Positions 5,218-48,770 of a DNA stretch of 64,000 nucleotides are shown here, in pieces. The stretch is from positions 1-64,000 of the forward strand of contig NIVC01001693.1 in the NCBI GenBank assembly GCA_002269645.1, given 5' to 3'. Made by a program: the position numbers and the translations under genes. The stretch's first letter is position 1. Each line of letters opens with the position of its first letter. The notes beneath the pieces were generated by a model that saw only the letters and a list, made by a program, of their open reading frames with translations, was not told the DNA's origin and ran no database searches. This stretch comes from Macrostomum lignano. Lineage: Eukaryota.

Positions 5218-6288
5218 TCACATGTTGCGGCAAGCCTTGCTTTTTTTCTTATTTTTTTCGATTTCCAGCTTCTTGAGCCGCTCTTCCAATTCTTCATTTC
5301 TCTGTCTCATGCTTTCTTGTTGTTGCTTCATCTCATCATTTTCTTGCTTCCTTCTTTCCGCCTCCTGCTTTAGAGTTTCCTGTTCCTCCTTCATTTTTTC
5401 GTTTTCCAGAGCCATCTTCTCATTCTTGATTCGATTGTCCTCGTTCTCTTGCTTCAGGCGTTCCTGCTCCTTGAAGATCCTCAGGGCAATCTCCATGTTC
5501 TCGGCCATTTTCTCGGTGACGGTAAACAGACCAGTGATGGAATCTCCCAAGCTGTTCAGATCCCGCAGAGCATCATCAAGCTTTCCTCTTTGGTCGTCAA
5601 ACTCACCAGCCAGTTTTTCCAGTTTTTTCGCCTTATCGTAGGTGTAGGCTCCCGCGCCAGCCGCGGCTGCACCCATTGCAGCAGCTCCAACCGCAGCGAC
5701 GCCTCCTGTAGCAAAGGTGAGAAAGCCAAGAGCGGCAGCGCCTAGAACTCCTGCAGCGCCATATCCGCGAGCCTTCGTGGTCGAGGCTTTGGACCTGCTT
5801 TCCGCGGCTGCGACTCTGCACCGCTCTGCGAGGCGAGACCCTACGTCAACAGCACGATTCAGTTTCTCTCTGAACTCTTTGTAGCACTTGCCACAGTTGC
5901 CGGCACTCTCCAGCATTAACTGCAGCAGCTGAATGCAATTTTGAACTTCAGCGCGACTAATTTCCTTTCGTTCAAAGGTCTCGTAAATGTAATTTTCAAA
6001 GGACTGCCACTTTTCCCTCAGCTCAAGACATCTTGACCTCAGATCTTCTCCAGAAGCATTTGTGTCTCGCATTGCGTCTCGAAAATCACTGACCTCGGCT
6101 TGGGCGATGCTGGCGGCTTCCTTGGTCAATTCCGTCAGAATATCGTGCGATTGTTGTGTGACAGCTGATACAGTATCATAGATGCTACTTGCAGTGCTTG
6201 CTATTTTGCTAGCAGCTTCAGTCGCTGTCGTTAGGTTGCTCATCATGTTCATAACGTTCGTGGCTGCGCCTGTCTTTTTTTGCGACAT
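5218..6288 (-). CDS. Cluster protein P1: 356-aa helical protein with Gly/Ala hydrophobic hairpin, coiled-coil tail and polybasic+CaaX end (ApoL/ClyA-HBL-like architecture)
   Basis: Intronless ORF. First ATG at 6288 in AAAACAATG context (the track's TTG at 6321 is less likely). Hairpin GYGAAGVLGAAALGFLTFATGGVAAVGAAAMGAAAAGAGAY; E/K/Q heptad tail; C-terminus KKKSKACRNM. Clear paralogy to 19234-20286. Confidence 0.88.
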   Translation of the reverse strand: MSQKKTGAATNVMNMMSNLTTATEAASKIASTASSIYDTVSAVTQQSHDILTELTKEAASIAQAEVSDFRDAMRDTNASGEDLRSRCLELREKWQSFENYIYETFERKEISRAEVQNCIQLLQLMLESAGNCGKCYKEFREKLNRAVDVGSRLAERCRVAAAESRSKASTTKARGYGAAGVLGAAALGFLTFATGGVAAVGAAAMGAAAAGAGAYTYDKAKKLEKLAGEFDDQRGKLDDALRDLNSLGDSITGLFTVTEKMAENMEIALRIFKEQERLKQENEDNRIKNEKMALENEKMKEEQETLKQEAERRKQENDEMKQQQESMRQRNEELEERLKKLEIEKNKKKSKACRNM

Positions 6289-6395
6289 TGTTTTGATCCT
6301 GTTTGTTATTCTTTGTCTCAAAAAATACTACAAGTCTGCTTTTAGCGTAGGATCTCGAGCTAATTTTGATCGTATGTAGAACTCCCGTTCTTTAT

Positions 6396-6403
6396 TATTT
6401 ATA
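6396..6403 (-). promoter_or_regulatory. Candidate TATA box of P1
   Basis: TATAAATA on the minus strand ~110 bp upstream of the ATG at 6288. Confidence 0.45.
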
Positions 6404-7744
6404 GTGTTAAAGGTACGTACACTCATGTGACATTGTGTGCGCGCCGTTTACATGTATTTACTATTTTACATGAAGTTCTTGTCCAATGAGAGTGCAGCAC
6501 TTGTTCTTAGAAATTTTCGTCCGAAATTTACTTACTCATAGCTTCTCATAGCTCATATCATAAAACTCATAGTTTTTTCTCCACCTCAACGAGGATGTGG
6601 ATATTTGTTATGTTTTTATTTTCCTATGGAATTATCCAAGACGGCATTGGAGACAGGGTGCGCTGTGCGCTGATGCCCATTTTTCCAGAAAGGTTTGGCT
6701 TGAAGCAGAAATAATAGAATTGGCTAGCGCATAGCCCTCAAAATTTAGAGCAAATTTTGGTGCTAAGCCGACTTACAGGAGATTTTTATGTTGTAAATGA
6801 GTAGTGGATGTACATTGATCTATAATGGTGCGTTATGGAGAACGATTTCACTGATGCGTCAATGGGCTATGGCCGGTGGCACAATATTTAACAATGTCTT
6901 CCTTAAAATTAAAAATAGGAAGGTAAAAATCTGGGAAAAATACTTCAATAATGGAAGCGTCAGTTTGTCAGCTCAGTCCTTAATAATTAACCATCTCCTT
7001 GTAGCTCTTTTTGCCGTCCTTCGGCTGCCATTGGCTGTCTTTTGAGCTGCTCTGACGTCTAGGGCAGTCGCTTGGCGTCTGGTGCCGTCCCCGATGCATG
7101 ACCAGCGAGTCCCCATGCACTTCGGACGTGCTCCCCACCCCTAATATGGTCTACGGAGCCGACTCTTCAAATGCGTCGGTCTTTCATGGTGATTGTGGTG
7201 ATTGCTGTCAGAATGACGTGGTCTGTCCGTCTCAATATGTCGTTTAGCTCGTAAATCCTCTCAGACTGGCGATCCTGTTTGCTGATGGCGGGGTCGCGAG
7301 TGCTGAAGGCTCAGAACAGTGATATTGATTTGCGACCAAACAGCAGACTGCCCGATGCGACACCCGTACTTAGCGGCAACATGAACTGAGTGAATCGCCT
7401 GGTTGAGTCCCTGGTTGCATCATTATGGCATTGACACTGTTGGCCCGGGATAGAATGACGCGAGCCATTGCACACTTTCTCTCCAGTGTTTTGCAAACTT
7501 TACTAGCTAACTTTCTTCGATGATATTATGAGTGGAAACTGTAGACATCAAAGCTTGTAGCGGCAGAAAAAAATTAAGAATTTGTACCATTTTAAGCTGC
7601 AGTTTATGGACTACAATTAATTTTTAATCTATAAATTACCAATAAACCGGCATACCAGCTATGAACAAAAGTTTACATCGATATTGTGCTGCATTGTACC
7701 AAAGATATTTGTTTTAAGCTACACTTTAAGAGTGAGGGACGGGG

Positions 7745-7913
7745 CAAGGAGTTCTATAATTAGCAACCTGGAGTGAAAACGAGTTTTTCAGTTTTACCTC
7801 ATGAGGCCAGACTAGCATAGACATTCAGTGCTGGCTCCTTATCTCTACAATTGGCGTGGCCTCATGAGGTAAAACTCGCTTCCACTCCAGATTGCCAATT
7901 ATAGAACTCCTTG
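7745..7913. mobile_element. Fold-back inverted repeat / MITE-like element
   Basis: Arm 7745-7808 (caaggagttctataattagcaacctggagtg...ttttacctcatgaggcc) is the near reverse complement of 7858-7913 (ggcctcatgaggtaaaactcgcttccactccagattgccaattatagaactccttg), ~50-bp spacer. Confidence 0.75.
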
Positions 7914-8335
7914 GACGGGGGTTTGGTGGCAAAGCCCCACCCACCACCGTAGACTATTTTACATGTAATATAGAGTTTTGGCCACAGATAAATCGTTGTA
8001 CAATGGTAACTTCTAGTATAGGGGTCCATGTTTTCGTGCTTTCTCTAGTGCTCAATTTTCAAGCGTTAATGTGTCAATGGGTATTAACAAGCATAGAAAC
8101 TGGCCCGCCAGGCCAAAATTTCAATTTTTTGCGCGTGCTTCTTACCTAAAGCAATCCGAGTACAGAAAAGGGGGTTCATCTAGCTACCTGTACTGGATGT
8201 ACACTTACTATGTTCACTGACTCAGTCATGGAGAGAATTTTCTTACTTAAGCTGAGAGCGGCTGCATTTGATTGCATTTGATGATATTTGAGTTCTTGAA
8301 TTCAGTGTACTCGTTGCTCCTAATGCAAATTTGGA

Positions 8336-11300
8336 CTGCGCACAGTTAAAGGGAACTTCATGTGGTAGAGATATTTTGCGAGCTTCTATACCTGCGTTTC
8401 ACGCGTAACCTCATCCAATAAAGTAAAGCCATTGTACAGCGGCTGGGTTCTCTCAACCACTGCTGCAGATTGCCACCTTTAGCTTAGCTACGCATTCTTC
8501 GAAGGCTTAACGGATTGAGAAAAGATAGAGCCGAGATGCACAGATGAGCCCCGTACAACATTAGAGCTCATTCCTTGGTATTCTGTACAGCAAGTCGAAT
8601 TTGAAGTTCCCTTTTGTCTCCTCCAATGTACGATTTTGAGTAAACAGATTACTCTAGCCACCTCACACCAGAGAACAGTACAGAGCTTCTGCAGTTTAGG
8701 AGTTTCGCAGAAATACGAGTATACACTTCAATTTTAATGCATATCTTTAAGTTTCTTCTCCTAAATTTATCCAGTAAGGTATACTCAGCAACAGTCAAAA
8801 TTTCCACCCCACTAAGCGAGATGATTTTTCACTTATTGCAAGTGACGCAACCTACGGCACGCGCAAAGCTTTTTGCCGCTTGGGGTGGCTTGGGTCTGCT
8901 TAATGGTCCAGGCCTGGACATTAAGTAGACCCAAGCCCAGGAACAACGCCCCGCCACATCAAGCCGATGCTGTTAGTCAACCGAAAGAACAGCTACAGCT
9001 GCCCACTCTGCGCTGTCCTTCCCGGTCCCCAGACATGAATCCCATCGAGCATGCCTGGGACTTCCTAAAACGCAACATTCGAAAATAGAATCCACCATGA
9101 ATTTTGCGGAGAGCTCTGCGTTATGCCATTGAAAACGCTTCGGAGCAGCTTCCCCAAGACTTTCTGCGCCGCCTCATCCTTGGGATGCCCCGCAGAGTCG
9201 TCGCACTTCTGCGTGCGAGGGGATACCACACGCATCGCGATTCTAACTGAATATCGCATAAAAAAATTATGATTTTGTGCGACTGACGTTTACTACGAGT
9301 ATTGATATTCAATCAACTTTCCCTTCCTCGCGGCGGCTTTGTAGTTGCGTAACTTGAGGGTTGAATTGTGAGTGTAAAGTTTTCGCAATTTGGAGGGTGG
9401 AACTTTTGACTGTTGCTGAGTATATACGTTGAAATACGCTGTATTCAATGTCTGCAGGTTGTCAACTCGAAAGTTTCGATTCTTCGAAGACCGCGCGAGA
9501 TAGAGAAAAATGCCAAGATATACAGAGACAACCGAGAGACACAACAGCACAGCAAAGCCATCAGTAATGCCAAGTTAGCTGGGAGAAGATAAAAATGCAC
9601 CAAGGGTGTTTTGGGCTCAGAGAGTGTAAATGACTGACAATTAGAAAGTGTGTGAGCGTGCGTATGAGTGCTGTGCCTGCGTACAGTATTGGCGCGCCTG
9701 TATGTGCTCAGGAGTCAGCTGAATGGGCAGAATTGCCTGGTTGTTGGTTGTGGAATGATGTCGTGGAAGGCGTTGCACCTTCTGCAAATATTAAACTCTT
9801 CTCGACTTCCACGAGAGACGAAATTCAAGCATGAGCAACAGTCTGTAAAAATGTACAGCAATGAGCGAAAATGGCTCTAGATATTAATTTACGACAGTTA
9901 TATAGAATGTCATTATATATTATCTAATTCAATATTGTTGCCACAATAGCAAGATATTAGGGATATTTTATGATAGACTGCATAAACAATCATAAATAAA
10001 CTGTACAAAAATAAACGGAACTTCGTCCAATGTACGCGCATAATTTAACTGGATGTACAGCGACAATAAGTTTATCAACGCTCTACCCCAGCGAGTTTTA
10101 AGAGCTGAATCCTACGAAGTCTTTATTGTCTGTCTCACCTGTCTCGAGTGTCTTTCGCCAATGCTCATAGCAGTAGTTAGATAGATGGGCATTTGCATGT
10201 ACGTATAGGTTACGTACAGTGCATAGCTCGTAATGGCCAGGACAACGAAAACACTACGTATGAGGCAGAGTGTTTTTTCAAATTTTTTGCCTTCTTTTTG
10301 TATTTGCAGCCTGTCTCAAGCGGTACACAGCGTACTAAACGGTTTGGGTGTGAAATTCAGTAATGGTACCAAAATGGTTGCAGGTTTTTTTCCCATATTG
10401 AGTAGCAATTGGGATATTAAGCGTCTGAGTACCCAATCATAAAGAATTTTCAACTCATGAACCAAGGACTTCTCTTGAACCAGCATCAATCTGCCTCAGA
10501 GAGAACCCCGGCTTACACGCGTTATTTATATTTCCAAGTGACAAGTTTGAGCATTGAGTATATAATTCGTCTTAGATAATGAGTACTAGTAGACAACGAT
10601 CAGTGAAGACTAGGTTTTACTACGCTCGTACTGATAGCTTGGATCATATATACGAGCTGCAAAATCCTGTCTTTTCCGTGTAGCTAATCATTGATTGGGT
10701 ACTGCTTATTGCTAATCTATTCTCATCCTCAAAGAGAATGAGAAAACTCACCACCTGTAGAAAAAATTGTTTTGAAATTCGGCCTTCACTGTTTTTGACA
10801 CTATACGTAAACTGCAGTACTAGTTTGTTTAATATTTCTGTGCATTTTACCACATCGTAGCTCGTACACCGCATATGTACGAAAAAGAGAACTTCATCTA
10901 TCTAACGTACAAACTTTTTTATCATTCGTCCCTTGTTTTAATAGCATCTTTACAGTAAACAACTAACCAAGCACTCAGACTGTAGAATTAATACTGTATT
11001 TAGTATTGTATTGTAAAGTGATGTTCGCTGATTTTTTCTAACCAGGAGACTAAAGCCGAGTTAGAAAGAAGAGGTTTGTAAAAAACGGTCATGAATCTAC
11101 GCGCAAGGCAGAAAGCATGACGATCAAGTTCAAAATACCCCAGGAATACGAAACTTTTTTACCTGTTAGGGCCTTTAGCTTAGGTAATGAAATCATAAAC
11201 CCGCTGTCAGGCTGTCTCACAATGCCGTACGCGTACAGCCATAGGCCACTTCGGTTTACTATAATCTTGTTTCTCGCTCATACTTCGAGAAGCCTCATTG

Positions 11301-11555
11301 CGGGAATTACAAATTAAAATGTACGCCCAAGTCTGTACATACGAAAGGGAACTTTGGCAAGAAATCTAGTAGTGCATGAGCAGTCCTTCGTAGCAAAACT
11401 GTTATAGAACCAAAGCAAACTGTCATTTTTGCATTTAAATAAAAATTCTCGCTCTAAAAATGACCAAACCACGCAAGAAAAAGCATCGAAAAAACCTAAA
11501 TGTAAAAAAATAAGTTTAAGAATAAAGTTTTCGCATCTCTTAAAAGGTAAAGCTA
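8336..11555 (+). repeat. Segmental duplication copy 1 (blocks ~8336-8750, 9440-9620, 10770-11555), homologous to 17108-18760
   Basis: Shared anchors such as ctgcgc..cagttaaa(a)gggaacttcatg, cgaaagtttcgattcttcgaa, caagcactcagactgta and aaagcatcgaaaaaacct in the same order in both copies. Confidence 0.9.
8870..9240 (+). mobile_element. Tc1/mariner transposase remnant (C-terminal half, stops and deletions)
   Basis: Translates to AWGG..., NNAPPH, PSRSPDMNPIEHAWDFLKR and LILGMPRRVVALLRARGYHTR, matching the Tc1 WPxxSPDLNPIEHxW and SMPRRxxAVIxAKGGHTKY motifs. Confidence 0.9.
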
Positions 11556-11738
11556 TTCTTTGTATGCTTCTTAAATCACAGAAGTTGAAAAAATCCAGAA
11601 ATTATGGCACTCGGGTGCTAAAATTAAGGTCGTACATGATCGGTTTTTAACTAGCAAAGAGCTTCTTAAAAGCTAGTAATTTACCTAGTTTCAAACTTAA
11701 ACTTAACAAAAAAATGAATGCATGTCCATTTCAGAACA

Positions 11739-12755
11739 ATGGCCATACCTCATGCGTCCGATCTGATTCATGATGCTCAAGCGTTCAAACTGAACAATGA
11801 AATTATTAGTATCAACAGAACGTTTTGGTTGGTATTGAAACCCTACGATCAGTTACTAAAAAGGCTGACGAAATTGATGTCGGAAGCGTAGAGTTGCTGG
11901 AAGATTTTCGGCACAGTTTGCTTTCTTTGGGTACACAATTTGATGCCACTAAAGATGCTGCTTCAAATCTCGAAAATAGTGGACAAATCATGAATAAAAC
12001 TCTACGGGAAATTGTGGCGACCCATGAAAAGACATAAAAAAGTTAAGGACTGTCTTGACAAGCTGCATGAAGTGCTGGATTCAGCAAACGAATATAAAAA
12101 GGAACACAAAAGTTTTGGCACCTGTCTTGAAGAAGTCATCCAGAACGCTGAAAATTTGCGAAATAACCTGGAAGATGAACACAAGAAATCCCAATTAGAG
12201 GTTTCCAGCCGAAAAACTAAAGGATATGGCGCAACGGACGGATTGGCAATCGCTGCCAGTGTGTCCGTGAATCTTGGAATCGCTGGATTTTTCACTTTGA
12301 GTGCTACATGGGCTCCTGCAGCTGCCTTGGCTTCTGGAGTAGCAGCTGGCACAGGACTTGGAATCGGATCTGTTACCAAGGGGATCAAAACTACCCTCGA
12401 CGTTCAGGAGTTGGACAGGAAGGCCGACGGACTGCTTAAAATCATCGATAGTTTGTCGGCTAACCTGCGTCAGCTCGATAGGGTATATGAGTCATCAACG
12501 GAGAAAATCCAGTTTTCCGACGACATGATTAACGCCATTTCTGATATGATAGACATGTACCAGGAACGGCACCGGGTTCTGGAGAAGGAGGAAAGATTAG
12601 AAGCTCAATACCAAGCTTTCAAGGTTCAGTCGTCAAACATGCGCAACCTAGAGGAAAAGTTCCGAGAATCAGAAGCTCGTCAGAATGAACTGCTCCGAAG
12701 CCATCAAGAGCTCCAAGCTCAGCTGTCGGCCAGGTGGAGATGTATCGTAATGTAA
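11739..12755 (+). pseudogene. Cluster protein P2 (~338 aa if repaired), two frameshifts; ends in canonical CaaX CIVM
   Basis: ATG at 11739 after tttcag acceptor (MAIPHASDL...). Frame changes at ~11823-11826 (TTTT) and ~12027-12041 (A runs). The joined N-terminus NNEIISINRTFLVGIETLRSVTKKADEI aligns with P3 RKRILDLNKNICKNIETVRNVAAQAKKI. Hydrophobic hairpin, coiled-coil tail, ...ARWRCIVM. Could be an intact gene with sequencing indels. Confidence 0.75.
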
Positions 12756-13509
12756 TGGTGATGGATCCTCATGCAACGATAATTAGCGTTGTTTAACAGT
12801 CAAGAATCAATGACTGACAAGTTTATGACTGCTATGGAAATATTGTGCTTGTGTAGTGTAGAGATTCAAAAACTTCTTTAGCTACAGCTGATTCGTCAAT
12901 ATCCTTTTTTATGCTTCTATGTATTATTTCCTTTCATGTAGCTTAAGTCCCACAGCTGGCTTTTATAAATGTTTATCAAGTGTTGAACGCTAAGGTGAAG
13001 GTTTGTTTATTTTTCCGCGTCTCATAAACAAAGGTTCACCCATTTTTACTCGTACAATGTAGATGTGCGCGATGTGCATAAAAAAGGACTTGTTGTGAAT
13101 TTCTCAGAGTTTTCAACTCAAAAGGATGCACTTTTCTCTCAAATTAATTACTGCTTTCAGTTTTTCTGCTGCAAATCGACTTTATCTGATGTACAAAAGA
13201 TCAGTTTATTGTTACAATATTGGTAAAATAATTTGTTAGAATGCGCTTACTCCTAGATTCTACTCGTATAATACTTAATGCTCTTTTTTACTTTTTTATC
13301 TGTTTATATAGTTTTATAGTTTATATATAATTTCTCAAAAAATTCTCACTAGTTTACCAAAACGCATTGCATATTGCTCATCTGCTCATCTTTAAATTGA
13401 GATTTTCATTAAAGTTTTCTTCTAATTAAGATTGCTGATTTTATCGATTGGTTCGTCATGCCATCGCACTGATACTGCATTCCACCCTCCCCATTTGGCT
13501 CTTGAGGAG

Positions 13510-13780
13510 CAGGAGAATCAAGAGAATGGCCTTGGAAAAAGCAAAGATAAATATTCAAGGAATTTGAGGTAAATGCAGTCAAATCAATTCTAAAATTCTC
13601 ATTCGACAGCTACGAGAGATGCTCGAAAAAGCAGTGAAAATATATGAGGAATACAAAAGATTAAGCACAGATCTTAGCGATTCAGAGTAGCGATAGAGGA
13701 AGCGAGTTTGAGTGCTAGAAATGCTCGAGCTCTCGGCTAAACTATAACAGGACTCTTAGGAGCTGCGGGCTTGGGTCTTG
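13510..13780 (+). pseudogene. Internally deleted pseudogene fragment of P4
   Basis: cagtcaaatcaat...cattcgacagctac.agagatgct.gaaaaagcag and gagtgctagaaatgctcgagct.tcggcta...acaggactcttag match 19533-19750; 13516-13555 matches 18770-18810. Stops and deletions present. Confidence 0.9.
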
Positions 13781-14739
13781 GGATATGATGCAAAGTAATG
13801 AGCAAACGATTATGTATAGTGAGTGGTGCAGGAATGGCACGAGAATCATACGGAAATATATGTTGCAGTTGCAGGAAGAGGCGAGAATGGTGTGAGATGA
13901 TGTACGAATGATACGGAAATAAGTGGTAATACAGAAACTCACAATGGTGATTAGCTTGTACCTTAAAATAATTATCCTTTCCATAAGTACAGAGTAAGGC
14001 AAGACATAGTGAATACACATCAGTTTATGCAGCTAATTTCCCATGTTTGTTTCCTTTTTTGACATTTCCGCACAGATTAGACACAATGCCTGCGAGAAAT
14101 ATTATTTGTTGTCAGTGTTCCCTTTTGGTTGCACTTTTCTACTCTCTAGGACCAATTAAACGGCTCTTAGATTCGAGACAGTTCGAGCGCGCAGGTACGG
14201 ACCGTACGCCTATTCTCCATCCCCTTTGTGCTCAAGTTCTAGTCAGTGAAACTTCCACCTACGAGTACATAAGCTAATGCACATTTTTCTGCGCACAGTT
14301 TACACGCACATTTTGGCAGCGTTTTTGGGAGTACAAGCTAGTACTTAAATAGCTTGTTTTTCGAAGTTCCAGTATATTTTTCAAATTGCAATGAGTAAAT
14401 TAATCAATTTTTCAATTACGAACTAGAAGTTTGTGTAAAAACTGATCTGCCACTGACCAAACCACATTACTAAGGTAGGTTCCAAAAGTGCATTTGACTG
14501 ATTTTTACTTCAGAAATACTGAAGTAATCTATATATAAGACGCAACACTCGTATTTTATGGAATAATTTTTAAGGCGGACTTTTCCATATTCGACACGCA
14601 TGCTTTTTACCCATATGTTGATCACAACTGCCACTTTTTAGCTTGTTTCTTTTAGCTTGCTAGTGATGGGCGCTTGGTCTGTTTACATGGATGTAATTAG
14701 AATAATATGTAATAATTATAATTGATGATTACACCTGCC

Positions 14740-14978
14740 AATTGGGCCAGATGTTGCGCGGCGCATCTGAAGGTTCAGTCCATGGACTGGGGGGTCGCCA
14801 CACACCCTCAATTACCCCAGCTAATGCTGGCATCCATTTTACAGCTGGCCGAACTGAAGAAATGCAGAGTTAAGCGTTTTGGTCAGTGAGGGACACAAAT
14901 TGTTCCAGTGGGATAGGGAATTGAGCCTCCGACCTTCTAGTCGTTAGTCCGACGCTCTAACCACTAGGCTACAACCCC
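14740..14978 (-). mobile_element. tRNA-derived SINE
   Basis: Minus strand begins ggttgtagcctagtggttagagcgtcggact (A box) ...ggctcaattcc (B box), then ggaacaatttgtgtccct...cttaactctgca core shared with the copy at 20688-20760. Confidence 0.8.
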
Positions 14979-15238
14979 TGTTGGCTAAAGCCCCTGTTGT
15001 AGCTTACAAATAAAACTACATGTAGCTTAAAGTTTGTAGCTTATAAAGCTTACAAATCTACGAGATCGTAGATCGCGAGTGTCGCGTCCTTCAACTTAAT
15101 TAGTCCTTGCTTTTCTCTGTCTCTTTAGCTCGTAGTAATGCACCGAAAAATAGCTGCTCTCTTTTTTTCAAGCTCACACAAATATGAACGTTTCTTTTTA
15201 GCTCTCGGGACCAACTCACTTCTAAATCTAAGAAAGCA

Positions 15239-16297
15239 ATGGCAACAGCCAGTGCTCCGGATGCAGTCGCCGATGTGATTAAGTGGACGAAAAGTTTGGA
15301 GGCCAGAAAAAGGATACTGGACCTAAATAAAAACATTTGCAAGAATATTGAAACTGTGCGGAATGTGGCTGCACAAGCTAAGAAAATCAAACCGGATAGA
15401 GAATCGGTGAAGACGTATCAAAAGGATATGGAATCGCTTGTTCAAGCCTGTGACGATGTCCTCTCAATTGGGAAAGCGCTTTCTGTGTTAGAGAAAGATA
15501 TGAATCAAAAACTTCAGACACTAAAGGAATTGCGAACCACGGAAGAAAATGCTATCGAAGACTTTGTTCATAAACTTGAAATTTTACTTAATTTGGCTAC
15601 AGAGTACTCTGTGAAATTAAGTAACTACGAGAAAACCTTTTCGAAAGTGGCAAAAGCCAGTAGCGAATTGTTTGCTGAGTTTAATGGAGAACATGAGTGT
15701 GCGAAGAAGGATACTGATGCTAAGTTATTTAAAGGAGCTGCCACAACTGGAACTGTAGCGACAACCCTTGGAATTGTTGGATTCTTTATGGGTGGACCAT
15801 TAGGTGCTGCGGCTGCAGCTGTTATGACTTCGTGTGTCGGAATTGGGGCTACAGCTATCTGGACTGATGAAATGCGTAAAAATGTAAAAGAATTTCGGCT
15901 TGCAACAGCTTTACTGCAAGCAAGCACTAATGAACTCGAATCAATCTCAGGCGAACTGACAAATACTAGAGAGGCCTCAGAAAGCCTCACCGAATCCGTA
16001 GCATTGGTCATCAAATTCCACAGAAGCCGTGCCGAGAGGCAGAAAATGGTGCAAGAAATTCAGGACCTGAAGATCCGCGATGAGGAACGAGAAACTGAAC
16101 TGCGTCGGTCGAAAGAAGAAAATCTTAGACTCAGTGAGCAGAATAAGACAATGCGGGCGTTTGTAAGCGGAGATGCTGCCACAACCGCGAAGTCGCTGGA
16201 GGACAAGGAGAAGAAGATTAAAGAGCTGGAGCGACAGCTTCTGATGGAGAAGGAGAAAGGAAAGAAGATTGCACGTCAGCTTCTGGGCACAGAGTGA
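15239..16297 (+). CDS. Cluster protein P3: 352-aa helical protein with Gly/Ala hydrophobic hairpin and coiled-coil tail
   Basis: Intronless ORF, AAAGCAATG start. Hairpin KGAATTGTVATTLGIVGFFMGGPLGAAAAAVMTSCVGIGATAIW; charged heptad tail; paralog of P2. No CaaX (ends KKIARQLLGTE). Confidence 0.88.
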   Translation: MATASAPDAVADVIKWTKSLEARKRILDLNKNICKNIETVRNVAAQAKKIKPDRESVKTYQKDMESLVQACDDVLSIGKALSVLEKDMNQKLQTLKELRTTEENAIEDFVHKLEILLNLATEYSVKLSNYEKTFSKVAKASSELFAEFNGEHECAKKDTDAKLFKGAATTGTVATTLGIVGFFMGGPLGAAAAAVMTSCVGIGATAIWTDEMRKNVKEFRLATALLQASTNELESISGELTNTREASESLTESVALVIKFHRSRAERQKMVQEIQDLKIRDEERETELRRSKEENLRLSEQNKTMRAFVSGDAATTAKSLEDKEKKIKELERQLLMEKEKGKKIARQLLGTE

Positions 16298-17107
16298 GCT
16301 GATTATTATTTGTACTATCAATATAAAGGTATAAAAAGTGACAATTGATAAGTTTATAAAAAAACATTGTACCTTACCGAGAGTGTTATTTTTTGTTATA
16401 ACTATAAGAATAGCTGTTTAAATTTGAACTTCATTCAGCCTTTGTAGCGCAGTTGTTTTGTCGCTGTTATCAATAAACACCACTATATTTTGTTATTATC
16501 CCGTTATCATGTTATTTCAACACTGTATGTAAGCACGGTCACAAAACTGATGCAGTAGCTATAGAAATCATTAAGAAAAGGACTTACAATTTTTTAATAT
16601 TTTTGGGCTTTGCTTTCCAGATAATCGTGGTAAATCGTAGTGCAACTCTAATTTCTTTTTGCATCCTTTCTTCAATTTTTATGTGGAACCTTTATTATAG
16701 AATTACATAATTACAGTATTAAAAGCAGACTCTCGAAAAATCATGAAAAGTTTTTTATATTCTTGAAAATAAAATTTCATTTTATTTTATCCAGTTTCTT
16801 TTGTCTTAAATACATACAGAAATTCGGTCCTATATAATTTTAAACTTTTTCGTATTTTCTTATCGGAAATGTACAAAAAGTAAGGTACTCAGAAGCCGTG
16901 CGTTATCTATCCATTCTTGCACGCTCTCTATGTGTTTAAGCAGTGGAGTTTTGGCCATAGACGATTTGATATTACAATCTTGAAATTCATTTCTGGCAGT
17001 AAGTTTTCTTAATGACATGATATTGATGATACAAGATAAGATGACTGAACCTAAAATTCCCTTTTAATTTCAAACGCACCGTATCAGCGTACAATTGCTC
17101 CTTATGC

Positions 17108-18810
17108 ACTGCGCGCAGTTAAAAGGGAACTTCATGAGGCAGAGGTAATTTGCAAGTCTCTACCTACATTTCAACTTCAACCAGTAAAGTAGAGCAATCG
17201 TACAGCGGTCTGGCTTTCTCGGCCATTGCTGTAGGTTTCCTCTTTAGCATAGCTACCCATTGTTCCAAGGAGTTGAGGGTTGCGAAAAGATTGAACCGAG
17301 ATGCACAAATAAGCCCCGTTCAACATTAGAGCTCATTCCTCGGTATTTTGTACAGCAATTCGAATTTGAAGTTCCCTTTTGTCTCCGATGTACAAACTTT
17401 GAGTGAGCAGATTGCTCTAGCCACCTTATGCCAGAAAATAGGGGACCTTATGAATAGAGCTTCTGCATAGTTTTTGGAATTTCGCAGAAAGGTACACTTA
17501 ATTTCGCTGCTCGGGGCGATCTCCAAGTTTCATTGCTTAATTTCAGCCAAAGGGGACCGCCATTGTTTAGCTGCCTCGCTGTATTCAATGGTTGTCAACC
17601 CGAAAGTTTCGATTCTTCGAAAACTGCGCGAGCGAGAGAAAAAATGCCAAGATGCGTAGTGACAACCCAGAGACACAACAGCTCCGCAAGCCAGGGGTGT
17701 CGCCAACGGGGGGCGGACAAAAAGATCTCGGGGGGACATGCCAATGCTTTGTCCTCTCTACTCCACAATGTGACCCGTTATGGAAATCAATAATTTTGCT
17801 GCAGGGCGACAAAACATATAGCGCCTTTGGAGCTAAAATGAATGCTGACAACACCGATTCTGAAAATAACCTACATGTAGGAATTTAGTCATGTACATGT
17901 ACATGTAGAATATTTGGCTTTGTCCCCCTACCATAAAATCCATGGCAACGCCCCTGTGCAAAGCCATCAGTAATGCCAAATCAGCTAGGAGAAGATAAAA
18001 GTGCACTTGGGGTGTTTTGGCTCTTCCCAAATTCCCAAAAATCGCGAATTCGGCCTTCCCTAGTTTTTGACACAACGTAAACTGCAGCAGTAGTTCGAAT
18101 AATATTTCAGTGCATAGTTGTGCCCCACTGTACACCGCATATATACGAAAAAAAGAGAACTTCATCTATCAAAATTTTTTATTATTCGTCCCTTGTTTTA
18201 ATGGCCATCTTTAAGGTAAACAACTAATCAAGCACTCAGACTGTACAAATTAATATTTTATTTCGTACTGTATCGTAGAGCGATGTTCGCTTATTTCTTT
18301 TCTATCCAAGACACTAAAGCCGAGTGAGTAAGAAGAGGTTTGTAAGAAACCGACACGAATATACACGCGCGTCAGAAAGCTAACCTGAGCTAAGGAAATA
18401 AAATCTTAAACCCACTATCAGTCTGGTCTCACAATACCGTACAGCCATATGCACTTCGGTTTATTATTATTTTGTTTCTCGCTTATATTTCGAGAAGCCT
18501 CTACGGAGATACAAATTCAATTGTACGTCCAATTCTGTAAATACGAAAGGGAACTTCGCCAAGAATTCTATAAGCGCTGCAGTCCTTCGTAGCAAAACTG
18601 CTGGAAACTCAAAGCGAACTGTTACGAGCGTATTGTTTGAATAAAAGTTATCGCTCTAAAAAGGACCAAACCATGCTTGCAAAGCAAAGCATCGAAAAAA
18701 CCTCCGTGTAAAATAAGTTAAGATAAAGCTGCCGAGGGTCTTAAAGGGTAGAACCTCAGGAAATCAAGAAAATAGCCTTGGAAAAATAAAAGATAAAGGA
18801 TTAAGTAAAA
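17108..18810 (+). repeat. Segmental duplication copy 2 (upstream region of P4)
   Basis: Collinear with 8336-8750, 9440-9620, 10770-11555 and 13516-13555. Confidence 0.9.
17692..17956. mobile_element. 265-bp hAT-like MITE
   Basis: 14-bp imperfect TIR CAGGGGTGTCGCCA / TGGCAACGCCCCTG. Degenerate ~8-bp TSD (cGCAAGC / tGCAAAGC). The paralogous copy at 9551-9558 (aGCAAAGC) is the empty site. Confidence 0.85.
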
Positions 18811-19102
18811 TTTCTGCAGCTATGGAATGAACGTACTAAAGGCTTTCTACTTATACAGTAGTACGGATGGATGGTTTCAAATTCAGATTAAGTAATCAGC
18901 AGGTAAGTACGCACCAGCCATTCTGTACAGTATATAAGGTAATGAGCTAAATTTTAAGTACATCAAATTGGTCTAAATGTTTTACAAAAAGGGAAATTTT
19001 GAAGCTGCTTAGGTATACTGTAGACTAGTTACAGAGAGAAAACTAATGTTTCCTTCTAAATTTAGCGATTACGCTGAGTTTACGAAGATTTGATGCACTA
19101 CA

Positions 19103-19109
19103 TATAAAA
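19103..19109 (+). promoter_or_regulatory. Candidate TATA box of P4
   Basis: TATAAAA ~125 bp upstream of the ATG at 19234. Confidence 0.4.
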
Positions 19110-19233
19110 GCTGATGCTTGACGACCAAGACGATGAAACTATAAAAGAAAATATTTTCAAAACTGAGCGGAGCAATTTTATCGGATTCGGAAACGTTTGA
19201 AATAAAAATATTACCGCTTACCACATCATCAAT

Positions 19234-20286
19234 ATGGAGAAATTTGGCAAAAACCTCGTCACATCTGCTGGAATAGCCGGAAAGATGGTCGAAGCAGCCA
19301 ATTTACTGGTTAATACAGTTGTAGAGGTGACTAGCAGGGCACAAGAAGTGCTGATGAAGCTTAGCAAAGAGGCCGCAAGTATCGAAAGTGCACTAGCAGC
19401 CGAATATGAAGACGTTCTAAAAACGACAAAATCATCTGCCAACAAATTCCAGCGACTTTGCAACGAACTTCAGAGCAAGTGGAACCGGTTCGAGTTCAAC
19501 AGGGATAGGAACCCTATTGTGGCGAGGCAAGTACAGTCAAATCAATACGAAGAGATCATTCGACAGCTACAAGAGATGCTAGAAAAAGCAGCGGAAATTT
19601 ACGAGGAATACAACTTTTTTAAGGAGCACATGAAAGAAGCGGTGAGACTAAACACAGATCTTAGCGAGCGATCCAGAGTAGCGGCGGAGGAAGCGAGTTC
19701 GAGTGCTAGAAATGCTCGAGCTGTCGGCTACACGGCAACAGGACTCTTAGTAGTGGCCGGCTTGATTTTAACTGTCGCCACTGGAGGAGTCCTGGGCGGT
19801 GTGGGAGCGGCGGCACTGGGTACCGCAGCCGCTGGTACAGGCGCCTACACGAGCAGCCATGCAGGCAGTCTGGACAAGCTGGCCAATGAGTTTGCAGACC
19901 TACAGAACGACTTGAAGACCTCTTTGCGAGACCTCGACGGTCTAGGAGACCAGATCGAAAAAGTGATGGAAGCTACTGAAGCTGTAGCAAGAAAAACTGA
20001 AGAGGAAAAAGATTCTGTTGAGCAGCATCGACAAAATTTTCAAAACAATCCTCAAGTTGTCTTGCACCAACCGAATTCTTTCGAAGAACAATTGTGGCGA
20101 AGAGAAGATTTCGAACAACGCAACAACCCACCTGATATTAGGCAAATGCGGCACAATGCTGACCTAAGAGTTAAGGAAGCGGAATTAGCTCTTGAAAGAC
20201 ATCGTCGGGAACATGCGGAAATGCGTAATAGAGAGCTCGAATCGGGGCGCTGTTGCTTCTTCTGCTGTCCTTCCAGACGCTCTTAA
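19234..20286 (+). CDS. Cluster protein P4: 350-aa helical protein with Gly/Ala hydrophobic hairpin, coiled-coil tail and terminal Cys cluster
   Basis: Intronless ORF. KLSKEAASI and LCNELQSKWNRF align with P1 ELTKEAASI and RCLELREKWQSF. Hairpin VGYTATGLLVVAGLILTVATGGVLGGVGAAALGTAAAGTGAY; ends SGRCCFFCCPSRRS. Confidence 0.88.
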   Translation: MEKFGKNLVTSAGIAGKMVEAANLLVNTVVEVTSRAQEVLMKLSKEAASIESALAAEYEDVLKTTKSSANKFQRLCNELQSKWNRFEFNRDRNPIVARQVQSNQYEEIIRQLQEMLEKAAEIYEEYNFFKEHMKEAVRLNTDLSERSRVAAEEASSSARNARAVGYTATGLLVVAGLILTVATGGVLGGVGAAALGTAAAGTGAYTSSHAGSLDKLANEFADLQNDLKTSLRDLDGLGDQIEKVMEATEAVARKTEEEKDSVEQHRQNFQNNPQVVLHQPNSFEEQLWRREDFEQRNNPPDIRQMRHNADLRVKEAELALERHRREHAEMRNRELESGRCCFFCCPSRRS

Positions 20287-20687
20287 TTATTCCAATCGTG
20301 ACGGGATTTTGACACCGATTAAACTTACTGATGATTTTCTTAATGCGTTAATGCGAACTGTTCTTCGCAATCGTAAGTTGTATCAATTGTATTGGATTAT
20401 TGAAAGTTTTGTGCAGTCGTTTAGCATTTTTTGTCTATAAGGCTCGTATTTCAACTATTTTACCGCACGCTTCAACACAATTCGATTATGTTCAAGCTGA
20501 GATTCGAACTGTCTATCTAGTGTGTGCAGCCTTTTTACAAACACAATGCGTTTGTACCTCAGTATTTATGAGCTTAAGAGATTTCCTCCATATCCATATC
20601 TTGCTACTTGTTAGTAAGCGACATCGTATCTACTTTATTATGCTTATTGTACTTTTTTCATTATCAATAGCTAATACGAGTATAAAT

Positions 20688-21255
20688 TGCAGAGTTAAGT
20701 GTCTTGCTCAAGGGCACAAATTGTTCCAAGTGGGTCGAGAATCGAACCCCCGACCTTTTAGCAAGGACAACTAAAGCAACGTATATATATATAGGATGCG
20801 ACACTCACGTTTCATGGGAAAAAGTTTTGAAGGCCACTTTAGCTGGGTTCTACCGCTTTGCAATTAACACTAATTTATATTGTTTGCAGATTCTACATGG
20901 CCAATCGAATCTTTCGAAGAGTTAGAAATGGAGTTTAAGGCACGTAACTAATTTTAAATAGTAAGGTATACCTTGTTGAAAAAATGGGTTGCTTTTATAA
21001 AATCGAAATAAAAAAAATTGTTAAGCCAAAGCCGCGTATGCTATTTTATCTTAAAGAGAAATAAAATTCGAAGGTTCCAGCGAAAAATAGACATTTCCGC
21101 GTGAATCCATTTAAAAGTGACATTGTTTGGAAAAAGTGGTCTTCTAAACATTTTCCATAGATTTCGAGTCTACCTTCTATTCAAATTTAGTAGTCCTTGC
21201 CTATCAGTCGTGAGACCGACGCTCTAACCAAACTAGTATTATAGCTAGGCTAAAA
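20688..21255 (-). mobile_element. Second tRNA-SINE copy, split by a ~440-bp insertion
   Basis: 20688-20760 minus reads ggtcgggggttcgattctcgacccacttggaacaatttgtgcccttgagcaagacacttaactctgca (B box + core). The matching 5' part (ggttagagcgtcggtctcacgactg) lies at 21205-21255. Confidence 0.7.
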
Positions 21256-21955
21256 CCTCGCACATCGAATACAATATGGAAGAGATGCACGGACTCATTA
21301 AAATGGCCATATTACTGAGATTAAACGTGACCTTGATAATAAAAAGAACGTTAATTTGTTGAATTCAAGCCAGCCAATGGTCAAAGTCTGAGCTGATCGC
21401 GGAGATCGTCTTATAAAAATCAAATAACAGTTCAATATAAATGAAACTCGCTGCTGATCGTTAAAAATATATATTAAAATACTTATGGTTACGCTGAATC
21501 AAAGCTTAATATGTAGTTTATAAAATTGTGATGCAAATTGTTGCGATTGACTCGCAAGGTCATCATCGCCATTATGATGACACAGAATCAACTCGAAATC
21601 AAAATTCCGAAGCTACTGAACTTTGTTGCAGAAGTGACAAGAAGTATAAATGGCCCCTGTTTTGTGTACAGTGTGATCAGATGTTACATACAATCAGTTC
21701 ATACTACTGAGTCGGTAAAATCAGTAGCATCGGGGAAGAAATATGCATGTTTATATTTTTTATGAGGACGCACTTTTTTCCAAATTTCACGCTTGCACAT
21801 GGGTTCCAAACTTGCTAGCCTACTAACAGCAGTTACAGTGTTTCAGTTTCTTGTTTTCTTGTTTCAGTTACAAGAAACAAATTTTAGAGTCAATTAAAGA
21901 GCACCCAAAACCATCCATCAAAATTACTCGTAAGTGTCCACTTCTATCGATTGGC

Positions 21956-22669
21956 TCAATTGATCGACAGCTCATCAATCGAGTCCAGGAGTTGCATCAG
22001 CCGTACAGTCAACTCACCGAGTCTGTACGATGAAGCTGACCGGTCGGAAGCCTGCAGCTGCACTTTCAGCACGAGGCAACCGCCAGTGAATGCGACAAAC
22101 AGGCAGCCTGCTTTCAGCAGAGTTTTCAGCCAAAGAATTTCGAGTCCATTGATGATGTGGCGATCAAAACCGATGCAACCCCCAACTAAAAGTGCAACGC
22201 CACCGATAGTTCGGTAAACGTCACGCGGGTTTTGCGAGAGCAGCAGCCTACCGTTATCCAGACACCTTAGAAATGCCTCTTTAGCGCTAATCAGCTCCCG
22301 GTGATCGTTTAGAAAAGCTTGCGCTTTCTCTCGGCACTGTTTCTGCAACAGAAAGTTCCTATCAAAATACTCTCCGTCGCTCACATCGGCCGCCAGTGGC
22401 GTTGCGAAATCTTCCGCCAAGTTGAAGCACGCTCTGGAGGAGCTGCTCAAACTATTCGAAGCCGTGAGCAAACTTCGAACCAAATTTAATTGCTCCGTGC
22501 TCAGCTGAGCTCTGTGGGACTCAGTCTCTTGCAAAATGATCAGCAGATCCTTTGTCTGCTTGTTCGCGTCTCGAGCTGCCTTAGACACGATTTGGTAGCG
22601 ATGCTGAGCGCTCTGCCAGGCGTCATCGCGTCGTCTGGCCTGCTGCTCCTCTCTCGTGATTGCCGACAT
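21956..22669 (-). CDS. P5: 237-aa helical protein with two hydrophobic segments near the C-terminus; unknown function
   Basis: Intronless ORF with ordinary composition; acceptor-like caacag 8 nt before ATG; hydrophobic stretches IGGVALLVGGCIGF and LLKAGCLFVAFTGGCLVL. Confidence 0.7.
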   Translation of the reverse strand: MSAITREEQQARRRDDAWQSAQHRYQIVSKAARDANKQTKDLLIILQETESHRAQLSTEQLNLVRSLLTASNSLSSSSRACFNLAEDFATPLAADVSDGEYFDRNFLLQKQCREKAQAFLNDHRELISAKEAFLRCLDNGRLLLSQNPRDVYRTIGGVALLVGGCIGFDRHIINGLEILWLKTLLKAGCLFVAFTGGCLVLKVQLQASDRSASSYRLGELTVRLMQLLDSIDELSIN

Positions 22670-24606: not shown

Positions 24607-26295
24607 TCAGGCCAGGGGGGACTGCAGCACTCGTAGCGGAGTTGTCTGGATGCTGTGCACCGCCCTCAGAGGGCCGCTAGATGCCGAGCAATGAGTTGAA
24701 CTGTCCGCTGAGGCTGCCCGATGCAGATGATGCTGGTGATGATGCTGCAGCAGCTGGGGTGTCCGCAGGGCGCTGGCTGATGGCAGGGTGCTCAGCGGAG
24801 GCAGCGGCGGCGGCGGAGGAGGCAGCTGCGGTTGCTTCCTCGGCGGCGCCAGCGGCGGCAAGCGATCGACAGCCGGGGCGACGGCGCTGCCTCCGCGTCG
24901 GACAGCCGTCGGGCCGGAGGAAGCCGCGGAGGAGCCGCCGGCGCTCAGGCGGTGCAGCAGACGTCGGACGGCCGGCGGGCTGGGCGACGCTCGCGGAGGT
25001 CGCTGCGGTGTCGGCGGCTGCGGGTGCAGCTGGCGGCTCCGACCGGGACTGCGGCTGCGCGACCGGCTGGCCAGCCGACTGACCGCCCGGCCGACGGCTT
25101 TCAAAGCGCCACCGAGGGCGCCGCTGCTTCGTCGACGACGCCGACGATTCTCTTCCTGTTGAATGCTGTCGCTGGAATCTTCTCCGTTGTCGAGCTGGTG
25201 GTGCTGGCGGGAGATGTGGCGCGCCTGCTGCTGCAGCTGCAGGAGGTGCTGGTGCTGGTGCAGGCCCAGCTCGCTGGGGAACTCCACCAGCAGGGCGACT
25301 CCGCTGTTCAGGCGGGCCATCTCGCGCGGACAGACTGCGGCTGATGGGGCCCGGGCGAGGAGGAGGCTGGGCCCTAGGGATGTGGCCAAATTTGAGGCGT
25401 CCATGCGGTTTCGCTGGCTATTGCGGCTCACCTGAATTTTATAGAAAAAAATGGACTTTTTAAATCAGAATTCTAGTGTAATTTGCGGATGATACTACTG
25501 AACAGGCGACTTAGTAGAATGATGAGTCAATAAAACTAAACAGACAATTTCTTGTTTAATAAAAAACTCGAAAAAGAGCCTCACCTCGCCAAGAAAGCAG
25601 CAGAGGAACTGCAGGGCGGTCAGCTGGTCAGCTGGCAGCAGCAGGCCGCACAGTCGCAGGATTCGAACCCGGCGCTCCGGGGACGCCTGAGTGGCAGCTT
25701 CGGCCAAGGCGTGGGCCATCCTGGCCGGCACCAGCGGCTCCGGCAGCTCGCGCAGCCAGGCCTTCAAAGTTGAGCAGACATCCTGCGGCGGCGTGCCGTC
25801 TCGGATACCGCAGCCGTGTTCCAGACGCTGTCGAAGGTCGCGCAGCCGCAGTCGGGAGCCTTCAACGCGGAACAGGCCCTCGGTGTCCAGAAGGCCGCCA
25901 CAGCGCAGGTAGGCGCAGCAGTCGGCCAGCAGGGCGGGCACCCGGCCGAAGCCGGGCACCTCGCGGCTTGGCTGGTCCGCCAACGCCCGGCCAAAACAGG
26001 CCGTGGTCGTCGGCGCTGCTGCAGTTGGCGTCGAAGTCAGCAACGAACTCGCCGCTGAAGCGGACAACGCGGCAGCAGCTGGAGGAGGCCTCTGCTGATG
26101 AAGCGATGGCTGATTTGGCAGCCGGATGCCAAGCAGCCGGAGCTCCTGCTCGGCCAGAGCGGCCGCCACCGCCGACACCGGAGGCTGCTGCAGACGGCAG
26201 GTGCACTCTGCCGAACTTTGGCTTCGCTTCTTGTCGCAGGGCGAGCGGCTGTTGACGCTGTAGGTCTTCGCTGAGCACAGAATCGCTGCAGACAT
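24607..26295 (-). CDS. RhoGAP-domain protein (ARHGAP11-like), 2 exons 26295-25585 and 25431-24607, 511 aa
   Basis: FGRAL...VPALLADCCAYL...EGLFRVEGS (arginine finger)...DVCSTLKAWLRELPEPLVP...FLGE|VSRNSQRNRMDASNLATSLGPSLL. Phase-0 GT-AG intron 25584-25432. Low-complexity tail. Confidence 0.93.
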
Positions 26296-33570: not shown

Positions 33571-34229
33571 GAAATCTCCTTGAGACTTCTAAGCAAAGTC
33601 ACCCATATATTCAATAAATATTCTCCATAATAGAAAATCACTCAGAGTAAAACTTCCGGACACTTAAAACCATAACGAACTCGACTTACACTGCGCCTAG
33701 CAACTATTTGATGTCGCTGCTTGACTTCCTGCATCGAATCTGGTGGCCCCCTTAATGACGCAATCCGCTCTTATGATCACTTTGACTCTGACTTCTTCAC
33801 TTTAACTGTTAACCTCCCCCCAATACACTTCTCTAAGTTGACAGTAGGGCCTAATTACACCCCTATCTACACACCTTGACAACACCAGTTTCACACTGCT
33901 TGGTTTCTGTTCTGAGTATACAGAGGCAAAGCCGTGTAAGTGAGAACATGTGTGCGTGTTCTTCGCACCTGAATGGGGGAGCATGACTACCACCATGGCA
34001 ACTGCACCACTATCGCAGAAGATTATAATTCTCATCTTGCAGTTGGGATTGTTTATTTATTAGCCATCTTGAAGGTGACGGTCCATCGGTTGGGTGTTAG
34101 ATTTATTCACTGTGTGTTGCGCAACTTCTTAAACCCGATAAATTCTATTGGGGAATTTCGAAATACAACTTGCACAGTTTTATATGGTTTCATTCAGGCT
34201 CAAAATTCAATTCAATTGATTCACTCACT

Positions 34230-43776: not shown

Positions 43777-48770
<4,994 letters not shown>

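Follow-up and report, generated by a model that had tools for sequence, protein, structure and literature searches.

The free-living flatworm Macrostomum lignano carries, on contig NIVC01001693.1 (GenBank assembly GCA_002269645.1), a cluster of paralogous genes, here designated P1 to P4, whose deduced products share a Gly/Ala-rich hydrophobic hairpin set among long predicted helices (Table 1). The DNA analysed, hereafter the window, comprises positions 1 to 64,000 of the forward strand of this contig, which is C1693 in the searched genome (764,410,778 bp in 5,269 contigs; Mlig_3_7 was published as 764.4 Mb in 5,270 scaffolds, PMC5730564). A hidden Markov model (HMM) of the family, built from an alignment of 38 homologues and run on the six frames of the window, matched P1, P2 (in two frames), P3, P4 and a gene fragment at ~13568-13785, and nothing else. 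Since the matches in P1, P3 and P4 span essentially the whole profile, the coding sequences of these genes consist of a single exon; they stand out because M. lignano genes average ~4.9 introns (PMC5730564).

A first-pass annotation of the window had proposed four paralogous genes encoding ~340-355 aa. P1, P3 and P4 are indeed intact single-exon open reading frames (ORFs), but P2 is frameshifted as assembled, its frame at 11739-12755 containing two stop codons. Comparison with contig C2257, which carries an intact copy of 343 aa, identified three deletions in the window copy, of 12 bp before position 11777, of 1 bp before 11825 and of 2 bp before 12036; the frameshifts compensate each other, and the terminal frame is open only from 12024 to 12755 (243 aa). 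Because no stop interrupts the shifted frame over the 211 nt that separate the frameshifts, the window copy of P2 is either a very recent pseudogene or a product of (homopolymer) indel errors of the assembly. Arm 1 of its hairpin also shows Asp and Asn substitutions with respect to the intact C2257 copy.

P1 and P4 are paralogous far beyond chance (pairwise E of 1e-44), and a maximum-likelihood tree reproduced the two subfamilies anticipated for the cluster: P1 and P4 fell in one major clade, together with the L007/8 and L011-15 groups of loci, and P2 and P3 in the other, beside a 16-member clade. Homologues from other eukaryotes formed a separate clade; these are also single-exon, and sometimes tandem. 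The one pseudogene previously noted is real, being a fragment 73% identical to positions 19524-19764 of P4 and containing stops and a frameshift. Conversely, we rejected as a fifth, distant member the ORF at 21956-22669 on the minus strand, which showed no detectable similarity to the family by HMM (E=1.5) or hhalign (probability 0.7%).

Table 1. Genes, protein motifs and duplicated blocks of the cluster in the window.
Feature	Positions	Strand	Description
P1	5218-6288	-	Intact ATG-to-stop single-exon ORF, 356 aa, group A; family HMM E 1.9e-90
P1 hydrophobic hairpin, residues 175-217, GYGAAGVLGAAALGFLTFATGGVAAVGAAAMGAAAAGAGAYTY	5638-5766	-	43 uncharged residues, G+A 65%, positive flanks
P1 CaaX-like box CRNM, preceded by a K-rich stretch	5221-5232	-	Kept in the C521 and C2257 copies
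Upstream block of P2	10776-11549	+	74% identity to the P4 upstream block (self-BLAST)
P2	11739-12755	+	Group B, frameshifted as assembled; family HMM matches in two frames
P2 canonical CaaX box CIVM	12741-12752	+	From the sequence
P4-like pseudogene fragment, end of helix 3 to hairpin arm 1	~13566-13785	+	tblastn-type match, HMM match
P3	15239-16297	+	Intact single-exon ORF, 352 aa, group B, no lipidation motif; HMM E 1.5e-59
P3 hydrophobic hairpin, residues 166-209	15734-15865	+	Uncharged stretch
Upstream block of P4	18047-18750	+	Paralogous to 10776-11549 (self-BLAST)
P4	19234-20286	+	Intact single-exon ORF, 350 aa, group A; HMM E 5e-81; protein modelled
P4 hydrophobic hairpin, residues 163-208	19720-19857	+	Located between predicted helices 102-171 and 198-271, the two longest
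P4 Cys cluster CCFFCC	20251-20268	+	From the sequence

All 32 family members first collected contain one uncharged stretch of 37-53 residues, at around residues 165-215. In P1-P4 this stretch spans 43-52 residues, with a G+A content of 43-65%, and consists of two arms of 17-20 residues each, separated by a central TGG, MGG or TLG turn; it is bordered by GY before and (A/I)(Y/W)T after, and its flanks are net positive (mean +1.5 and +1.1). Summed over each arm, values on a Hessa-type insertion scale had medians of ~+1.1 and +3.0 kcal/mol, corresponding to marginal hydrophobicity, and arm 2 is mostly Ala and Gly. Marginal hydrophobicity is seen in buried hairpins of proteins that switch between soluble and membrane states.

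An AlphaFold2 model of P4, obtained with the 38-sequence alignment, reached a predicted local distance difference test score (pLDDT) of 80.4 and a predicted template modelling score (pTM) of 0.65; a single-sequence model (pLDDT 66) was not used in the fold comparison. Helices were predicted at residues 2-46, 52-92, 102-171, 198-271, 283-297 and 302-338, with long helices on either side of the hairpin and a charged C-terminal helix. The hydrophobic Gly/Ala hairpin with a GG-type turn and the charged C-terminal helix, both described from the first reading of the sequence, are consequently found in the deduced proteins and in the model. Judged from this model, the proteins are elongated bundles of four long helices; the Gly/Ala hairpin connects the two longest at one tip, and a charged helical stalk comes after them.

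Foldseek comparison of the P4 model with the PDB placed ClyA monomers at the top (TM score 0.45 for the query and 0.52-0.54 for the target, probability 1.00, E 0.03), followed by AhlB, AhlC and MakA, so the proposed likeness to pore-formers holds for the ranking of folds (TM 0.45-0.54) but not at a convincing expectation value (~0.03). We compared the family with the ClyA-type group as a whole (ClyA, NheA-C, Hbl B/L1/L2, AhlABC, MakABE and XaxAB/YaxAB). As in ClyA/HlyE, the predicted protein is an elongated bundle of long helices with a Gly/Ala-rich tip between the third and fourth long helices (residues 163-208 in P4, ~177-203 in ClyA), and the order of elements is shared, a long helix following two shorter ones and leading to the hydrophobic tip, a second long helix and a C-terminal helix. 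Alignment with hhalign was collinear on helix C of ClyA (probability 16-29%, score 29-32), whereas reversed controls scored 19-20, with a probability of ~1%. The family differs from ClyA/HlyE in being eukaryotic and predicted cytosolic, and in having an extra, charged stalk of 80 residues with CaaX or Cys motifs; also, the beta-tongue of ClyA packs on the bundle, whereas the hairpin of the family is predicted to be unpacked. Unlike the multi-component systems of the ClyA group, the cluster contains no partner with a non-hydrophobic head. A two-component system, suggested earlier from the two subfamilies, is unsupported because P1-P4 all have the same type of hydrophobic hairpin as head.

Searches with sequences and sequence profiles did not assign the family to any of these groups. 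Pfam identified no common family across members, and neither ApoL, HBL nor HlyE/ClyA-like models matched P1-P4 at E≤1. In six-frame searches of the genome, the HlyE model (PF06109) matched no family locus and the HBL model (PF05791) gave only noise, with nothing at family loci; a sequence search of P4 against the PDB returned nothing. The family profile matched mostly coiled-coil and designed-protein noise in the PDB. Amid this coiled-coil noise was Hbl L1 (7nmq), with E=2e-5 and a high composition bias; since the reversed alignment scored alike, this match is not evidence of homology and we rejected it. Matches to influenza HA2 and to syntaxin were judged compositional, and reversed P1, P3 and P4 sequences reached a best E=4e-4 against Pfam, which marks the null level.

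The ApoL proteins resemble the family as animal helical proteins without enzymatic domains, in which a Gly/Ala-rich hairpin with a GG-containing turn is followed by helices. ApoL paralogues are mostly intracellular, related to immunity and quick to evolve. However, the ApoL model (PF05461) matched 16 places elsewhere in the genome in a six-frame search, and none in the family, while the family HMM scored the ApoL-like ORFs at ≤7 bits. The distant homologue P0008 scored 17.2 bits against ApoL (cut-off 25.9), within the range of the reversed-sequence null. The two models do not cross-match, and we rejected the link. The position of the hairpin also differs, since in the ApoL-like locus L045 of M. 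lignano it lies near the N-terminus (~50-100) and not after three long helices. Genuine ApoL-domain genes occur elsewhere in the genome (C662:75651-77328, C1472, C1296 and C1981:200914-201882); some of them are multi-exon and one is a single ORF of 371 aa. The ApoL and HBL labels initially considered for the cluster should, on these sequence comparisons, be dropped.

Residues 104-257 of P4 matched Pfam SctB2 (PF05802) with 29.3-31.8 bits (cut-off 26.5), over model positions 1-148 of 162. SctB2, the minor translocon of the type III secretion system (SseD/EspB type), is likewise helical and has a central Ala/Gly-rich membrane segment. However, the family resides in a eukaryotic chromosome, with a multi-exon RhoGAP neighbour and minisatellites, and has no secretion-system locus. 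The match is most likely compositional or convergent, because it involves only one of 38 family members (in the 764-Mb genome, P4 and its twin), because the family profile gave probabilities below 5% with EspB and EspD, and because a secretion-system context is missing. Lipid-anchored effectors and scaffolds, such as proteins with K-Ras4B-type tails, farnesylated guanylate-binding proteins (GBPs), Ykt6, palmitoylated SNAP-25 and flotillins, have similar targeting signals and a charged stalk, but only as an analogy, since no GTPase, SNARE or SPFH domain was found in the family. From the model, the likeness to ClyA holds as an analogy of fold only, and at the level of sequence the proteins have not been established as members of a known family.

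The deduced proteins carry signals for lipid attachment, which had not been noticed in the first-pass annotation and which shift their likely site of action from the cell exterior to the cytosolic membrane face. Such a signal, either a CaaX box or a Cys cluster, stands at the end of three of the four genes in the window. The C-terminus of P1, KNKKKSKACRNM in the three copies, contains a polybasic KNKKKSK stretch and then the CaaX-like CRNM; the window and C2257 copies of P2 share the terminal CIVM, and P4 ends in RCCFFCCPSRRS, including CCFFCC. The L007/L008 subfamily ends in SCVCAIL (CaaX CAIL, dual-Cys CVCAIL), and its 51%-identical homologue from another sample, P0001, in SCVCSVL (CaaX CSVL). 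A Cys at position -4 occurred in at least three of ~12 subfamilies (binomial p ~1e-3 for a Cys frequency of 1.7%). The sequences show this Cys followed by aaX, conserved among orthologues, and prenylation itself is predicted. Additionally, the distant homologue P0015 has the N-terminus MGNCICCGCG, of a type typical for myristoylation/palmitoylation.

None of 32 members contained an N-terminal hydrophobic segment or signal peptide (maximum 15-residue Kyte-Doolittle mean of ≤1.43 in the first 45 residues), and transcript-length homologues from other samples begin at the same Met. Proteins that undergo prenylation or S-acylation are cytosolic; a CaaX box depends on prenyltransferases of the cytosol and is a mark of cytosolic proteins that face membranes. 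Because lipidation motifs are present and signal peptides are not, we place the family, as predicted from sequence, at the cytosolic membrane face, an argument for lipid-anchored proteins of the cytosol and against secreted toxins. The same evidence, several CaaX or Cys-cluster motifs and no signal peptide, disfavours the secreted membrane-attack effector that had been envisaged.

Six-frame searches of the genome gave at least 45 and 22 places for P4 and P3, respectively, and at least 46 distinct family ORFs in total. Only 19 matches to the family were found among 1.84 billion representative proteins, and the named relatives appear only as "hypothetical protein"; together with the lack of a Pfam family, this agrees with the proposal of an undescribed family. 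An exhaustive search of 50%-identity representatives with P4 yielded no match above 34% identity, and the exact P1, P2 (both the 243-aa window ORF at 12024-12752 and the 343-aa C2257 copy), P3 and P4 were absent from a collection of 15 billion proteins. Since neither the exact sequences nor representatives of at least 50% identity are present, P1-P4 and their homeologues have no protein record. Their missing records may reflect low expression under laboratory conditions. Other family members do have annotated protein records, including the distant member PAA82236.1 (hypothetical protein BOX15_Mlig022356g1), encoded on contig C486 at 100% identity. Word-indexed homology searches with P1 and with the family alignment gave nothing useful. 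As judged from these searches, the family is lineage-restricted, undescribed and partly unannotated.

Some relatives depart from the organisation of the window genes. In one subfamily, comprising L067 (C620:490557-491450) and L017/L018 (C859/C2998), the ORFs stop after the hairpin, at 208 aa, and in L067 sequence homologous to the C-terminal part is found again ~190 nt further downstream, without a change of frame; unlike the window genes, this subfamily may contain a short intron or an insertion. A public gene model of 1171 aa (P0002) joins a 5-aminolevulinate-synthase-like N-terminus to L008 (99.7% identity) and a low-complexity tail, a fusion that is probably an annotation artefact. L044, L074 and L078, from metagenome-type assemblies in ENA, are distant single-exon homologues on eukaryote-like contigs of 28 kb to 1.5 Mb, some of them in tandem pairs; the genes around the distant homologues were not informative.

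M. lignano is a recent polyploid, having undergone a recent genome duplication, and contains three homeologous, syntenic copies of the cluster, in the window and on contigs C2257 and C521. Positions 4.5-29 kb of the window are collinear with C2257, in inverted orientation and with 95-100% identity; the third copy, on C521, is more diverged. The copies show reciprocal decay, the damaged gene being P2 in the window (frameshifts), P1 on C2257 (split by an insertion of 3.3 kb) and P4 on C521 (truncation). Birth-and-death evolution, as had been suggested for the cluster, is visible in the at least 46 ORFs accompanied by a fragment and by frameshifted, insertion-split and truncated copies. The insertion in the P1 copy (C2257:131276-134557, loci L009 and L019) contains two Cys-rich ORFs, of 323 and 252 aa and without any Pfam match, and is probably an unclassified mobile element.

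The ratio of non-synonymous to synonymous substitution rates (dN/dS) was 0.25 for P1 against the C521 copy and 0.29 for P4 against the C2257 copy, which indicates, from the compared sequences, that P1 and P4 are under purifying selection. Other pairs gave 0.5-1.0, and in the adjoining RhoGAP exons dN between copies was only 0.003-0.008. Comparison of the window with C2257 revealed a mosaic: a segment of ~3.1 kb (12308-15457), intergenic DNA included, is ~100% identical, whereas its flanks, formed by the P3 centre and the 5' half of P2 (11723-12307), show 77-93% identity, and neighbouring genes 95-99%. In sliding comparisons, the centre of P3 (15458-16057) is just 77-89% identical, with P3 flanks of ~100%. 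For P3 codons 151-210, which cover the hairpin region, dN was 0.37 versus a dS of 0.12 (Fisher p=0.016). Gene conversion from another assembled paralogue was rejected as the origin of the P3 centre, since no other copy that could act as donor was found in the genome. The mosaic points to recent homogenisation, together with divergence that was retained, or accelerated, over the hairpin region.

The paralogous blocks upstream of P2 and P4 (Table 1), overall 74-78% identical, are accompanied by a further collinear pair (8332-8713 / 17105-17490). A search of the genome found no such blocks outside the three cluster copies, which rules out a genome-wide repeat or transposon; the blocks suggest instead an old local segmental duplication, and are possibly shared regulatory DNA. 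TATAAA-type boxes occur at ~6390 (-) and ~19100-19140 (+), ~100-135 bp 5' of the start codons of P1 and P4, and a TTTCAG acceptor-like site lies 4 nt 5' of the P2 ATG.

We tentatively propose, at a probability of roughly 45%, that these genes encode a fast-evolving, lineage-restricted family of cytosolic proteins able to bind or insert into membranes and to perturb or permeabilise the bilayer from inside the cell. The proteins would be synthesised in the cytosol without a signal peptide and tethered by a C-terminal lipid to the cytosolic face of a membrane. The hairpin would then enter that membrane or an apposed one, both of its ends remaining cytosolic, and self-association of the long helices would perturb or permeabilise the bilayer. 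Such action would resemble that of helical pore-formers of the ClyA, colicin or ApoL types, but from inside the cell; pore formation itself we infer by analogy with them. A role as defence or cell-death effector would fit better than a housekeeping function, because of the expansion of the family, its pseudogenes and the local non-synonymous excess. That the proteins represent a new class of metazoan, cell-autonomous executioners or anti-microbials, namely cytosolic, lipid-anchored permeabilisers with a ClyA-like fold, parallel to MLKL, gasdermins, APOL3 and GBPs and encoded in a diversifying tandem array, is a bolder claim that we consider unlikely.

Several observations count against permeabilisation from the cytosol. 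No Foldseek match had E<1e-3, and designed helical bundles scored nearly as high as ClyA; the sequence link to ClyA is marginal (probability 16-29%), and the hhalign probability against the Hbl L1 alignment was 91.9% forward and 91.1% reversed. The hairpin of P4 (170-198) was modelled with low confidence (pLDDT 36-43). Lipidation motifs at the C-terminus occur in only 4 of ~12 Macrostomum subfamilies, P3 lacks any, and the CRNM of P1 is a non-canonical CaaX box, with Asn at the a2 position. The recent genome duplication of the species would likewise be expected to raise dN/dS and to leave pseudogenes, and the genes without protein records could be silent. Finally, a permanent hairpin anchor with a scaffold role explains the same anatomy without lysis.

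This last explanation, in which the proteins are constitutive, non-lytic scaffolds or tethers, the Gly/Ala hairpin serving as a permanent monotopic or two-pass anchor and the lipid as a second one, is possible, although somewhat unlikely. Its parallels, by analogy only, would be caveolin, flotillin and stomatin, and the HR1-TM-TM-HR2 arrangement of mitofusin for oligomerising or tethering helices and stalk. Both flanks of the hairpin are positive and its borders aromatic (GY...AYT/AWT), as at true membrane interfaces, its arms are long enough for a bilayer (17-20 residues), and the combination of lipid anchor, hairpin and coiled coil is an established scaffold design; there are also profile matches to helical-bundle trafficking domains, syntaxin Habc among them, but these are weak and no stronger than the reversed-sequence null. 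The marginal hydrophobicity of the arms, however, with ~+3 kcal/mol for arm 2, would be poor for autonomous insertion, the best fold matches are pore-formers, and a lineage-restricted, expanded and pseudogene-rich family with dN/dS values of up to 1.0 would be unusual for housekeeping scaffolds. Those same values of 0.5-1.0 in several pairs, together with the reciprocal decay of P2 here, P1 on C2257 and P4 on C521 and the lack of protein records for P1-P4 and their homeologues (among ~15 billion sequences) or of representatives with at least 50% identity, would be accommodated by silent or decaying lineage-specific ORFs, drifting after polyploidisation and without present function. We regard this as distinctly unlikely, given that at least two copies each of P1 and P4 are intact, with dN/dS of 0.25-0.29, that a homologue from another sample still has the full architecture and the CaaX box at 51% identity, and that other family members are annotated proteins.

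A secreted or released multi-component cytolysin of the ClyA/HBL type, directed against microbes or prey and leaving the cell by non-classical export or holocrine gland release, has in our judgement little chance of being correct. ClyA-family folds do rank first, ClyA itself lacks a signal peptide, and the tandem array, with two deep subfamilies side by side in all three cluster copies, recalls the HBL/NHE operons. Nevertheless, no member has a signal peptide, the CaaX boxes imply cytosolic processing, and with one type of hydrophobic head in P1-P4 no A/B division of labour is visible; moreover, the Pfam HBL and HlyE models gave no match and the one to Hbl L1 equals its reversed control.

If the proposed cytosolic proteins do permeabilise membranes, they would provide a clear animal counterpart of ClyA-type helical pore-formers, implying that this design is usable from the cytosolic side with a lipid anchor and bearing on cell death or the intracellular killing of microbes in animals outside the well-studied phyla. 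Regardless of lysis, the cluster extends the gene catalogue of a model flatworm by four protein-coding genes that lack annotation and by a family of at least 46 ORFs. It also exemplifies homeologue-specific decay following recent polyploidy and offers a sharply localised hotspot of divergence over the putative membrane-insertion hairpin, open to tests of diversifying or balancing selection.

Outside the family, the ORF at 21956-22669 (-) encodes a helical protein of 237 aa, annotated as hypothetical, with a hydrophobic stretch and an FTGG motif. It is present as a single copy per homeologue, its C2257 twin being PAA59496.1, and is absent from C521; the C-terminal part differs between copies by a 15-aa deletion and divergence after it. 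The cluster adjoins a RhoGAP-domain gene with GC-rich exons (24607-26295, -; E=1e-21), and an SH2-domain fragment is found further along the window (43777-44331, -), both belonging to ordinary multi-exon genes. The M. lignano genome is very rich in minisatellites, and their density in the window is extreme, with 72 rows in the TRF output and periods of 13-93 bp; several long "ORFs" of the window, such as those at 33973-34923 and 46814-47815, are translated repeats only.

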